NCBI GenBank assembly: GCA_964199315.1
Contig: OZ116703.1
Span: forward strand, 31,806,001-31,870,000
Source: Orbicella franksi
Taxonomy: Eukaryota
DNA length: 64,000 nt
Direction: 5' to 3'
Shown: piece after piece, positions 42,688-45,884 of the stretch
How positions within the stretch are numbered: the first letter of the stretch is position 1
How the letters are laid out: every line of letters starts with the position of its first letter
Notes under the pieces: model-generated
Seen by the model: the letters and a program-made list of their open reading frames with translations, nothing else
Databases searched by the model: none
Told to the model about the DNA's origin: nothing
Made by a program: the position numbers and the translations under genes

Positions 42688-42786
42688 GATGCAGGGTGAT
42701 GAGTGAAACTTTTTTCCCCATCTTATCGACAATGAAGATAACCCTTCCGTCACTATGTGACCAAGCCAAACCTCTCTGACTGCATC
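42688..42786 (+). ncRNA. SNORD12: Box C/D snoRNA SNORD12/U106 family (snR190-like), copy a
   Basis: Stem gatgcag/ctgcatc; C GTGATGA 42696; ACTTTTTTCCCCATCTTATCGACAATG matches recalled U106 (ACUUUUUUCCCCAUCAGAUCGACAAUG); guide pairs with LSU GGGGAAAGAAG; D CTGA 42776. Confidence 0.82.
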
Positions 42787-43718
42787 AGGTTATTGGGTTT
42801 TATGTTTTCCTTACACAGTAGAACCTCCAATAACAGCCACCTCACAACCAGGGCCACTTCTTATTGTCCCAGCAGACAGTTGGACCACACATTCACTCTT
42901 ATTTTATCCTCTCTTTAATGGCCACTTCTCCACAATGGCAACCAAACCAGAGTTTTTGTTCTTTGTATTCACTAGTGTTAGCTCAAGTTAGTTTGAAGTA
43001 AGGGATTTTTTTAGGATGTCTCTAGGTGTTGAAGCTTATGAACTTTGCATTGTTCCTGTAACTCTTCCTATCCACCCCCTTAAATTTCCAGACCCACAAT
43101 GAGGACAGCCCAACGGACCTGATATCTTAAAGGATCCAGATATCTGAATTATAGCATGAAAGATCAAATAAAGAACTTAAGAAGTCAGTTTTTGGCAATT
43201 AAACAAACTTCATTCTTAAGTAAAAGTGAGCAATTCAAAACAAATCAAAGAATTCAACTGAAGAAACCGAACTGTCTAAACACAAGTCTTTACATGCTGT
43301 CAGAGCAGAAGTTTTTTCTCCGTTTCTTTCACTAAACTAAACCTAAAACTTGTTAGTACTGTGCAGAATTAAGATTAAATATAAAGGGTGGAGAATAATA
43401 AATTCATGCTTCAGTGCTGTGGTTTTAAGCCCTACAACTGAAAAAATCGAACACCTTTAAAGCTAGTTAGAAGTAAGTTATAGCCCCACTAGCATTGCCA
43501 TGCAGTTTAAAGATCTTCACAATTATAAGGGGATAAATTTAGCTGAACTGTGGGTTGAACACCAGGTTATTTAAACTAGGTATAAAAATTGAGTTACCAT
43601 ATACAAATATTTCTTTTTACATTCTAGCTGTACTACAGACAGAGCTTCAAGGGTTACTGAAGAATGCACAGTGAGGTGAGCATGAAAGTTTTTACTGTCC
43701 TGTTAACATGTTTACTTG

Positions 43719-43812
43719 ACCAGTGTGATGATAAATTGCCATATTCGCAGTTTCCACCAGAAAGATAATTGCGTCTTAATGTTGGCTTAATTTCCTTGGA
43801 TGTCTGACTGGT
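43719..43812 (+). ncRNA. SNORD14: U14 snoRNA, copy a
   Basis: Stem accag/ctggt; C GTGATGA 43725; domain A ATTCGCAGTTTCCACCAGAAAG; domain B TTCCTTGGATG plus T plus D CTGA 43804; 75 nt before the acceptor. Confidence 0.95.
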
Positions 43813-44006
43813 TAACTATATATATAAAACTTTTACTCTAACAATGAAGTCCTCTGAGATTTATTGACAGTGATTTGTTGATTTCAGACCCACAATGCGC
43901 GTTGATTGTCGAGGAAAAGCTAAGAAATTAACTTCAACCAAGATGGGTTCTGGTAAGTTCCCTCTGTGTTGCAACTATTGACGAAAATACTAGGTGTGAC
44001 TTTGTG

Positions 44007-44100
44007 ACCAGAATGATGATAAATTGCCATATTCGCAGTTTCCACCAGAAAGATAATCACATCTTAATGTTGGCTTCATTTCCTTGGATGTCTGACTGGT
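44007..44100 (+). ncRNA. SNORD14: U14 snoRNA, copy b
   Basis: Same architecture: C ATGATGA 44013, domains A and B, D CTGA 44092; 73 nt before the acceptor at 44173. Confidence 0.95.
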
Positions 44101-44544
44101 TGGCTCTGAGAGTTGCCAGTTGTTTCAGTTAGAACTAAAGCTAAATTACTTACAAGATGTCTGTTTGATTTAGATGTACACATGTGGGCAAAAGGTTATT
44201 CAAAAGAAGCAAAATAGCTGGTAAGTTCACTCTAGACAAACCAACAAATTGACAATGCAGATACAGTAAAGTGAGGCAATGAGCTTTGGAAGTCAAGTTG
44301 ATTAATTGGGTTTTCTCCCTGAAACAAAATTTTAAAATTTGATTTCTTGTACATTTAGTTGTATGTTCATTCAAACCTCAAATGTTGACTGGACTAACTT
44401 CACCTGACCAAATGCTTGATTGGTTTTGACTGAAACATAATTTCTTGTCAAAAGTTAGAACATCCAGTCCCTTGTGTTTATTTGGCTTCACTTGATGAAC
44501 TTGAGTGGTTTTGACTGTAGAATTAATTTTGTGGTGAAAGTTAA

Positions 44545-44658
44545 AGTGGTACTATGATCAAATTTTTCCCCCTTGATTTTTTAGGTATATCACATAGAAT
44601 TCCATGAAAGAATAAAAACGCCGTTTACTGTTTGCAATTATCTGCATTAGTTTTGGAG

Positions 44659-44701
<43 letters not shown>

Positions 44702-45361
44702 CTGATGACGTTATGCACTCAACCCAATTTTATATGAAGTATATAAATGGAGCTATCTTGGTCAATTTGCAGGGCAGACCATTGAAACTTCGTGGGCTAA
44801 TAGTTCTACAGGATACACACGTACTGCTATAAAATATTCTGTTCCCATGGCAACTCACTCTTTTCCAGTCCCTACCCACTTGATTTCAATATGCTAGTGA
44901 TTTTCAGCTTGCAAAACATTAAACAAGGCCACAAACTTGAGCTAACACATTTATATGCTTGCTGGATCATGCATATGAGGTGCAATTTGCAAATATCAAA
45001 ATGGAACACCAAAGGTGGCCAGAAAGGCCTTTAATATTGGGGAGGCCAATATATTGCCATGTTAACCAAACTGTTAAGCTCATATTGTGGAGCACATTTA
45101 GTAGAATCTTACTGTAAAGAATCAAACATTTCTGATACAAATTGGCTGAGATATATTTTTTTCATCATATTTGATCAAAATTTGGTTAAGTGTATGACAT
45201 CACGACTGGGCTAATTTGGATATTTTAAAAACTTGAATATTTCTGGAATGAAAAAAGACATTTGAATGTTGTAAACAGCATTTTTCTTCTCGCAAAGGCT
45301 ACTTGTTTATGTTTTAAAATTGCTGCGATAGGAAAGATGCAATTTTCGTCACAGTACCACT
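44545..45361. mobile_element. Non-autonomous Kolobok-type DNA transposon inside the snoRNA host gene
   Basis: TTAA|AGTGGTACTATGA ... TCACAGTACCACT|TTAA: TTAA TSD, 12/13 TIR and purine-purine termini (Kolobok rule; piggyBac starts with pyrimidines). Confidence 0.72.
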
Positions 45362-45506
45362 TTAAGGAGTGCTTCTCGGTGAACTGTAAGAGACCCTCTT
45401 TAACATTGCCCATTTTTGAGATAAATTAGTTTCAGTGTTTAATAAAAAACTGTAAATGAGGTGTTCTAGGTGGTACAACAATATAGATTCACACATGTAC
45501 ATCAAA

Positions 45507-45600
45507 ACCAGTGTGATGATCATCAGCCATGTTCGCAGTTTCCACCAGAAAGGTAATTGCATCTTGCTGATGGTTTTAATTCCTTGGATGTCTGACTGGT
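45507..45600 (+). ncRNA. SNORD14: U14 snoRNA, copy c
   Basis: C GTGATGA 45513; domain A GTTCGCAGTTTCCACCAGAAAG; domain B plus D CTGA 45592; stem accag/ctggt; 83 nt before the acceptor. Confidence 0.95.
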
Positions 45601-45790
45601 TTGATTAAAAGAAACCATGTGCTCCAAGTGGTTCCTCTAATTTTCATTGAAAATAAAATTGTTGCTTGTATTGTATTTTGTAGGCATGAACTTGAAAGCT
45701 CAGGAAATGTAAGTTGGTAAGTTTTGTGGACTTTAGAGGTTTAGTATAGATTTGGTGTATTTGTGAATTATGTTACCTGCAAGTTATAAT

Positions 45791-45884
45791 GTGTGGAATG
45801 ATGTGCAACTTTTTTCCCCATCATATCGACAATGATGATAAGCTCTTTGCCACCCTGTGGCAAGCCAGAACTGTCTGACCACAC
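45791..45884 (+). ncRNA. SNORD12: SNORD12/U106 family (snR190-like), copy b
   Basis: Stem gtgtgg/ccacac; C variant ATGATGT 45798; ACTTTTTTCCCCATCATATCGACAATGATGA; GCCAG before D CTGA 45875. Confidence 0.82.

Follow-up and report, generated by a model that had tools for sequence, protein, structure and literature searches.

U14 is a small nucleolar RNA (snoRNA) that takes part in 18S ribosomal RNA (rRNA) processing and guides methylation of an 18S cytidine. In Saccharomyces cerevisiae, U14 and snR190 come from one precursor that is cut by Rnt1 (PMC11971394; PMC8536666), snR190 being a non-methylating snoRNA that acts as a pre-60S chaperone (PMC8536666). Both snR190 and snR107 of Schizosaccharomyces pombe lie upstream of U14 in their respective yeasts, and the two have been aligned as orthologues with human SNORD12/B/C (PMC11971394); tables from surveys of Neurospora and chicken likewise treat snR190 as the equivalent of HBII-99, an earlier name for SNORD12 (PMC2780460; PMC2653536). 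In cluster V of Neurospora crassa, the snR190/HBII-99 homologue CD16 and the U14 gene CD37 are intronic and co-transcribed within a non-coding host (PMC2780460). The present analysis concerns a 64,000-nucleotide (nt) window of the genome of the coral Orbicella franksi (assembly GCA_964199315.1, contig OZ116703.1, positions 31,806,001 to 31,870,000 of the forward strand), in which U14 genes and genes of the SNORD12/snR190 type are found in the introns of a single host gene. An earlier sequence-only reading of this window had taken as premises that snR190 and U14 of S. cerevisiae form a dicistronic precursor and that SNORD12 has been proposed as the counterpart of snR190, and both premises agree with the reports cited above. 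No report of an snR190/SNORD12-U14 linkage in an animal was found in the literature searched, and the locus is the first animal case of an arrangement so far reported in ascomycete fungi only.

The gene order proposed in the sequence-only reading, SNORD12a, U14a, U14b, U14c and SNORD12b within 3.2 kb, was borne out by Rfam matches, by the plus-strand orientation of all five genes and by their rRNA guides. The further claim that both families belong to one transcript can be made with high confidence: the five genes occupy five consecutive introns of one spliced and polyadenylated host RNA (Table 1). In all, nine plus-strand snoRNAs from seven families were identified in this host by an Rfam scan of positions 36000-52000 at an E-value threshold; each of the nine introns contains exactly one box C/D snoRNA, and no snoRNA of the host lies outside an intron. 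The default Rfam scan, which uses gathering scores (64 for SNORD14, 43 for SNORD12, 45 for SNORD52 and 45 for snoR38), gives SNORD52 only, because all five U14 and SNORD12-type genes score below gathering. In Rfam, U14 corresponds to RF00016 and the SNORD12/snR190/snR107 family to RF00581 and RF04328.

The splicing pattern of the host was determined from two raw polyadenylated (polyA) RNA runs and two RNA contig sets aligned to positions 40430-46429; the RNA runs that contain this stretch carry the label "coral metagenome". In the polyA runs and RNA contigs, GT..AG junctions were noted at 40808>41600, 41625>41849, 41892>42584, 42635>43627, 43671/3>43884/6, 43951>44173, 44219>45683 and 45715>46320, and the join between exon 1 and exon 2 appeared in polyA reads as a loose end at 40732. 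Consecutive exon pairs from exon 1 to exon 10 were all joined in independent RNA runs, and reads from polyA libraries were present on the last exon as well as across the 45715>46320 junction. First mates mapped to the minus strand, which in a standard stranded library matches RNA from the plus strand. Exons are only 28-77 nt in size (about 105 nt for the last one), so that 151-nt reads crossed several junctions. The spliced RNA comprises approximately 541 nt, and its longest open reading frame (ORF), as computed, is 55 amino acids (aa). The locus is thus a non-coding snoRNA host gene of the GAS5/UHG type.

Covariance-model searches of the 497-Mb coral genome detected U14 and SNORD12-type genes at these sites of the window only. 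In agreement with this, an exact 16-mer from U14 domain B occurred at the three window sites only, and a SNORD12-type signature at the two window sites only, with no control matches; thus, no further U14 or SNORD12-type gene was detected in the assembly by any of these searches. The host would be transcribed by RNA polymerase II, spliced and polyadenylated, and by analogy with other intronic snoRNAs, each snoRNA would be freed from its excised intron by debranching and exonucleolytic trimming to the mature particle (snoRNP). Since the host holds the whole detected complement of U14 and SNORD12-type genes of this coral, both families would be under one promoter, with their output tied to it.

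Table 1. Features of the snoRNA host gene (positions are those of the window; bits and E values are from covariance-model searches)
Feature	Position	Strand	Remarks
TATA-like motif	39982..39988	+	~25-30 nt 5' of presumed host start; read from sequence
Non-coding snoRNA host gene	40010..46425	+	10 exons, nine GT..AG introns; junctions in polyA reads and computed splice sites
Host exons 1-5	about 40012-40055, 40733-40809, 41601-41628, 41852-41893, 42585-42636	+	
Host exons 6-10	43628-43675, 43888-43952, 44174-44220, 45684-45716, 46321 to about 46425	+	
SNORD15-like	40484..40591	+	Intron 1; Rfam 37.7 bits, E 3.9e-5; guides pair with 28S 2521-2531 and 2528-2537
SNORD52	41447..41517	+	Intron 2; Rfam 47.1 bits, above gathering (45); guide pairs with 28S 2661-2673
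snoR1-like	41689..41775	+	Intron 3; Rfam 42.1 bits, E 4.1e-6; 14 bp with 28S 3040-3053
snoR38-like	42442..42518	+	Intron 4; Rfam 38.4 bits; 14 bp with 28S 3061-3074
SNORD12/snR190-type 'a'	42688..42786	+	Intron 5; Rfam SNORD12 34.6 bits, E 6.3e-4; own model R1 69.9 bits
U14a	43720..43811	+	Intron 6; Rfam SNORD14 59.6 bits, E 8.6e-11; 76 nt to 3' splice site
U14b	44008..44099	+	Intron 7; Rfam SNORD14 57.9 bits, E 2.5e-10; 74 nt to 3' splice site
U14c	45508..45599	+	Intron 8; Rfam SNORD14 49.5 bits, E 5.2e-8; 84 nt to 3' splice site
SNORD12/snR190-type 'b'	45788..45887	+	Intron 9; Rfam SNORD12 42.9 bits, E 3.3e-6; own model R1 76.8 bits
AATAAA polyadenylation signal	46404..46409	+	In last exon; from sequence

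Guides were tested against one ribosomal DNA unit from the same coral genome. The three U14 genes (94% identity to U14a for U14b and 85% for U14c) all contain UGAUGA and CUGA boxes and a CCAG/CUGG terminal stem. In every copy, domain A forms 13 base pairs (bp) with coral 18S 82-94 and domain B forms 12-13 bp with coral 18S 413-425, the site of yeast Cm414 and human Cm462, where the fifth nucleotide upstream of box D faces C417 in coral numbering. The shortfall of these genes from the Rfam gathering score is due to a short variable stem region; U14 of other invertebrate-like contigs scored 53-71 bits. The four snoRNAs of the host that belong to neither family have guides of 10-14 bp on 28S. Distances from snoRNA to 3' splice site were 66-84 nt for six of the nine genes, within the spacing of about 60-90 nt expected in intronic hosts of the UHG/GAS5/Neurospora type, and 141 nt for the SNORD15-like gene, compared with 841 and 433 nt for the SNORD12-type genes.

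Copies 'a' and 'b' of the SNORD12 type carry the same first antisense element, which forms 11 bp (10 Watson-Crick and one G-U) with 28S 2636-2646, the GGGGAAAGAAG segment of helix 73. This helix-73 site is the target reported for snR190, snR107 and SNORD12 (PMC11971394; PMC8536666), and the guide upstream of D' for the site of the family, yeast G2395 or human G3878, is present in both coral copies; in coral numbering the helix-73 guanosine is G2638. The D' box is degenerate in copy 'a' (CUUA, followed by UCGAC) as well as in copy 'b' (CAUA), so that either guidance of 2'-O-methylation, as by the family in human and S. pombe, or a chaperone mode without methylation, as in S. cerevisiae, is possible for these RNAs. 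Copy 'a' lies 51 nt from the 5' splice site of intron 5 (42637-43627) and copy 'b' 71 nt from that of intron 9 (45717-46320). Each has a 7-bp terminal stem, as expected if these snoRNAs are processed independently of branch-point distance. In one RNA run (X4), contig depth was 600 in the 42630-42829 bin as opposed to 78 and 93 in the adjacent bins, and sequencing-adapter ends were noted on both sides of 42703-42780; as a sign of copy 'a' RNA, these observations are suggestive only. Copy 'a' also contains an 11-nt perfect match to 18S 1147-1157 (positions 42742-42752), located in an internal hairpin away from the D and D' boxes, which is probably coincidental.

The relationship of the coral genes to fungal snR190 and snR107 was supported by an alignment of the coral copies with metagenome copies of other origin and with fungus-like copies, the latter having a long GC-rich internal stem. 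This comparison, of a kind that had been suggested along with the sequence-only reading, revealed conservation of boxes, guide and motifs outside the guide. The columns kept were the C box, the first antisense element, UCGA after D', the C' box, GCCA before D and the D box, and of these UCGAC after D', the C' box and the second element containing GCCA were invariant or nearly so. The terminal stem covaries; both partners vary in five of its six pairs, and pairing occurs in 79% of cells as opposed to 19-50% with slid partners. Rfam assigns the copy of one metagenome contig (L117) to SNORD12 (43.2 bits, at or above gathering) and the fungus-like copy of another (L042) to snR107 (40 bits), and a model built from coral-type and fungus-like copies finds both groups with E values of 1e-13 to 1e-23. 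In yeast the second antisense element of the family pairs with domain I of the large-subunit rRNA. The best 28S duplexes of this element in the coral (-20 to -22 kcal/mol) were no better than those of shuffled controls; the corresponding human element has been termed 'relatively small' (PMC11971394). Because they share the helix-73 target as well as common motifs outside the guide, the coral SNORD12-type genes are very probably orthologous to snR190 and snR107. In two fungus-like contigs (L105, positions 3227-3342, and L138, positions 202-317), an snR190-type gene 5' of U14 keeps the boxes, the internal stem and the second element, and most helix-73 complementarity of its first element has been lost; judged from this pattern, the lineage may keep the chaperone role only.

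Occurrence of the pair elsewhere was surveyed in metagenome contigs of the Joint Genome Institute, which were scanned for a U14 signature (domain A, a gap, then domain B with box D) and yielded at least 120 loci. SNORD12-type genes beside U14 were sought by functional pattern and with model R1, built from 12 diverse copies; loci, mostly without taxon names, were grouped by U14 sequence and tallied by available flank. A SNORD12-type gene on the same strand, 0.2-2 kb from U14, was noted at 22 loci among the 120 matches listed. Among these matches, it was present at 8 of 9 coral loci and at 11 of 17 fungus-like loci, in the latter always 200-330 nt 5' of U14. Some of the coral contigs were 80-87% identical to the window over the whole host gene while in others only the snoRNAs aligned, and both adjacencies, that of copy 'a' to U14 and that of U14 to copy 'b', were kept across coral contigs. 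One contig with coral-like U14 (L055) contained two U14 genes followed by a b-type copy with the D box CUAA, and in L117 the SNORD12-type gene was approximately 425 nt 5' of U14. In L026, found in wastewater and bioreactor runs, U14 is preceded on its 5' side, at a distance of 670 nt, by a SNORD12-type gene that shares the CUUA-UCGAC motif of coral copy 'a', and no other snoRNA was detected across the 11.6 kb of this contig. Confirmation of L026 by a second assembly reaches as far as the 3' part of its SNORD12-type gene. The contig has introns of approximately 50 nt and carries RING/B-box and Filamin/NHL (TRIM-NHL) genes, an animal architecture by which L026 is inferred to come from a non-coral animal. 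In a separate group (L029, positions 1017-1097, and also L058, L098 and L116), U14 adjoins a snoR38-like gene (45.1 bits, gathering 45), a type that the coral host gene contains as well.

Two elements account for the long introns of the coral host: a palindrome in intron 2 with 75-nt arms (40954-41130), which resembles a miniature transposon, and an element of approximately 825 nt in intron 8 (44541-45365), bounded by 25-nt inverted repeats. Both were very deep in RNA contigs and are therefore repeated elsewhere in the genome. In intron 5, the motif ttccag ACCCACAATG at 43086-43101 repeats the start of exon 7 (43882-43897) and looks like an exon relic left when an intron-exon unit was duplicated; none of the RNA reads aligned contained a junction at this motif. 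Comparison of the three U14 units revealed no alignment of flanking introns and exons outside the snoRNAs, so the order of the U14 duplications cannot be reconstructed. A tandem array with a period of approximately 59 nt, visible in the sequence and in staggered self-matches, lies directly downstream of the host gene (about 47067-47422).

Genes, rRNA targets, the chain of splices and adjacency in other contigs are direct observations, and common ancestry of the linkage is a plausible but unproven extension of them. That a SNORD12-type gene directly precedes U14 on the same strand is most probably due to inheritance and not to accident. Neighbours of U14 vary by lineage (SNORD24/79, snR60-like, snoR38-like and plant families) and the SNORD12 type recurs, always on the same strand and, except for the second copy specific to corals, always 5' of U14, a pattern that favours an old unit repeatedly broken over independent assembly. 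Overall, we favour a host gene with an inherited SNORD12-U14 arrangement, an explanation whose probability we place barely above even. Inheritance from at least the cnidarian-bilaterian ancestor appears somewhat better than an even prospect, and origin of the linked unit in the common ancestor of animals and fungi is a tentative proposal to which we give rather less than an even chance. The ancestral form would be a pair of neighbouring introns of a non-coding host; copy 'b', which follows the U14 array, may be an old duplication within the coral or cnidarian-like lineage.

Several observations weigh against this reading. The suggestion of the sequence-only reading that the linkage may be ancient gained support from the same adjacency and order in a non-coral animal contig and in many fungus-like contigs, but most other U14 loci sampled were unlinked. 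In the largest animal-like group, a SNORD12-type gene was found beside U14 in none of the 44 loci among the matches listed whose 5' flank extended over 1 kb or more, the neighbours being SNORD24 and SNORD79, and it was lacking in 5 of 11 fungus-like loci with such a flank. Nor was a SNORD12-type gene noted at the U14 loci of L023/L133 and L038, of L039 (neighbour snR60-like), or of two plant-like contigs, L069 (Z112, snoR2 and three U14 copies) and L054 (snoR26, snoR27 and two U14 copies); a plant Z103-U14 linkage was not found in the literature searched. It was likewise not noted beside U14 in L110, where two U14 genes and a SNORD79-like gene occupy the minus strand of 5862-7549 and a 515-aa ORF on the plus strand matches PF10712, which we take to be an ORF antisense to hsp70 genes, in which case the locus would resemble vertebrate HSPA8. 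The linkage in L117 is less secure because the sibling contig L060 departs from it 93 nt upstream of U14 and revealed no SNORD12-type gene in 3 kb, and a search of the proteins of L060, L055 and L117 found none informative on taxon. A protein atlas and homology searches provided no named close relative of L026, whose placement stops short of the phylum. Independent non-fungal lineages with the pair may number only two, the anthozoan-like one and that of L026. A rough chance estimate for two positives among about ten non-fungal lineages at 2-5% per lineage, which is an inference and not a computed test, gives p ~0.02-0.09. Adjacency alone is weaker evidence than the sequence-only reading had assumed because the pair sits in a host with nine snoRNAs of seven families, among which chance could produce some yeast-like adjacency. 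The U14 loci sampled were without sponge, placozoan, ctenophore, choanoflagellate, unicellular holozoan or early-diverging fungus, and snoRNA coordinates are bounds predicted from sequence. Vertebrate U14 and SNORD12 are unlinked, as the sequence-only reading had stated, chicken U14 being in HSPA8 and HBII-99 in an expressed sequence tag host (PMC2653536), and movement of snoRNA genes from one host to another has been documented (PMC3511168; PMC2655684).

Alternatives to the shared transcript and to orthology carry little weight. Internal promoters might give rise to separate precursors, the chain of junctions representing read-through only; an extra promoter 5' of U14 has been proposed in Neurospora and S. 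pombe (PMC2780460; PMC11971394) and polyA read depth was low (20 and 37 reads), but canonical junctions join all consecutive exons from 1 to 10 in independent runs, single reads span several of the short exons and all of the snoRNAs are intronic, so that this explanation is the least probable of those considered. Nearly as improbable is that the SNORD12-like RNAs have an origin separate from that of snR190 and snR107 and, as box C/D guides, came to share their 28S site by convergence. Both coral copies are under the gathering threshold (by 0.1 bit for copy 'b'), they match the fungal snR107 family weakly (24.5-24.8 bits, E ~0.6-0.7), and their second antisense element, which pairs with 28S no better than shuffles, is CAAGCCA (animal-type) as opposed to CUUGCCAG (fungus-like). 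Nevertheless, the groups have in common an overall layout, the position of C', UCGA(C) after D' and GCCA before D, which are unrelated to the guide; a joint model recovers both, and snR190, snR107 and SNORD12/HBII-99 are equated in the literature (PMC11971394; PMC2780460; PMC2653536).

More serious is the explanation that the adjacency is convergent or accidental, i.e., that mobile snoRNAs gathered in one host in the ancestor of corals and that tandem duplication of intron units then gave the present order, any selective gain, for example from co-regulation of essential pre-rRNA snoRNAs, having arisen independently of fungi. The seven families of the coral host, the 85-94% identity of the U14 copies as tandem duplicates and the relic exon start in intron 5 are all in keeping with such a history, as are the number of animal-like U14 loci that are unlinked and have other neighbours, documented host switching by snoRNAs, and the occurrence of U14 in a putative hsp70-type locus (L110) as well as in chicken HSPA8. 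Against it, fungi, corals and the L026 animal agree in the family beside U14, its strand and its 5'-to-3' order, the pair in L026 standing without another snoRNA detected in 11.6 kb, and the adjacency was retained in corals whose introns no longer align. In addition, both SNORD12-type copies flank the U14 block, for which hand arithmetic with seven randomly ordered units gives ~0.05. We therefore regard convergence as a real possibility, though one clearly below an even chance, and retain the inherited SNORD12-U14 arrangement as the favoured explanation.

The general view of snoRNA genes is that they are mobile, and conservation of their genomic position beyond a phylum is rare. If the pair does date from the common ancestor of animals and fungi, it has remained adjacent on one precursor for approximately a billion years in ascomycetes, corals and at least one other animal, with the linkage broken in vertebrates and in several invertebrate-like lineages, and we know of no older snoRNA-snoRNA microsynteny. 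Such persistence would point to selection for a single promoter that supplies both a processing factor of the small subunit and a folding chaperone of the large subunit. It would also suggest that the textbook dicistron of S. cerevisiae is a derived, intron-less version of the intronic arrangement. A convergent linkage would make this locus no more than an ordinary host gene for several snoRNAs. The occurrence of the pair in corals and another animal makes an old, selected coupling of an essential 18S-processing snoRNA to a chaperone or guide of 60S assembly a testable question, the interest of which would rise if broader sampling confirmed vertical descent.

Among known systems, GAS5 and UHG resemble the coral host in their short exons, polyadenylated RNA without a meaningful ORF and many box C/D snoRNAs, one per intron. 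The coral gene differs from them in that a 5'-terminal oligopyrimidine is not evident at its presumed start and in that its five large-subunit guide families all target 28S 2521-3074, in close pairs. We take this segment to be the peptidyl-transferase region (domain V), and it would be unusual for the snoRNAs of one host gene to be grouped by the rRNA region that they target. The vertebrate ZFAS1 gene (SNORD12/B/C) also has one snoRNA per intron, with SNORD12 copies in consecutive introns of a non-coding host, and U14 of vertebrate HSPA8 and RPS13, like that of the coral, is found approximately 70-80 nt upstream of 3' splice sites. In vertebrates, however, the two families occupy unlinked hosts, those of U14 being protein-coding (PMC2653536), whereas in the coral a single non-coding host contains both.

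Similarity to the fungal systems extends to the order of the genes. As in the dicistron of S. cerevisiae, both families are on one polymerase II precursor with the SNORD12 type 5' of U14, copy 'a' being in the intron directly before that of U14a. The phrase "as in yeast" used in the sequence-only reading is apt to this extent; it does not extend to the processing unit, which in S. cerevisiae is intron-less and separated by Rnt1 and in the coral is an intronic array of nine snoRNAs, each in a separate GT..AG intron and divided from the next by a spliced exon. The mamRNA/snR107-snoU14 precursor of S. pombe likewise has an intronic SNORD12-type gene 5' of U14 on one precursor, with the same layout of antisense elements and boxes (PMC11971394, PMC12508059), but U14 is exonic there, following intronic snR107, and intronic in the coral. 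The nearest known layout is that of Neurospora cluster V, in which a helix-73 guide accompanies U14 and both genes are intronic in one UHG-like host RNA. Two snoRNAs have been reported for the Neurospora host as opposed to nine in the coral, which include three copies of U14 and an extra SNORD12-type copy 3' of U14.

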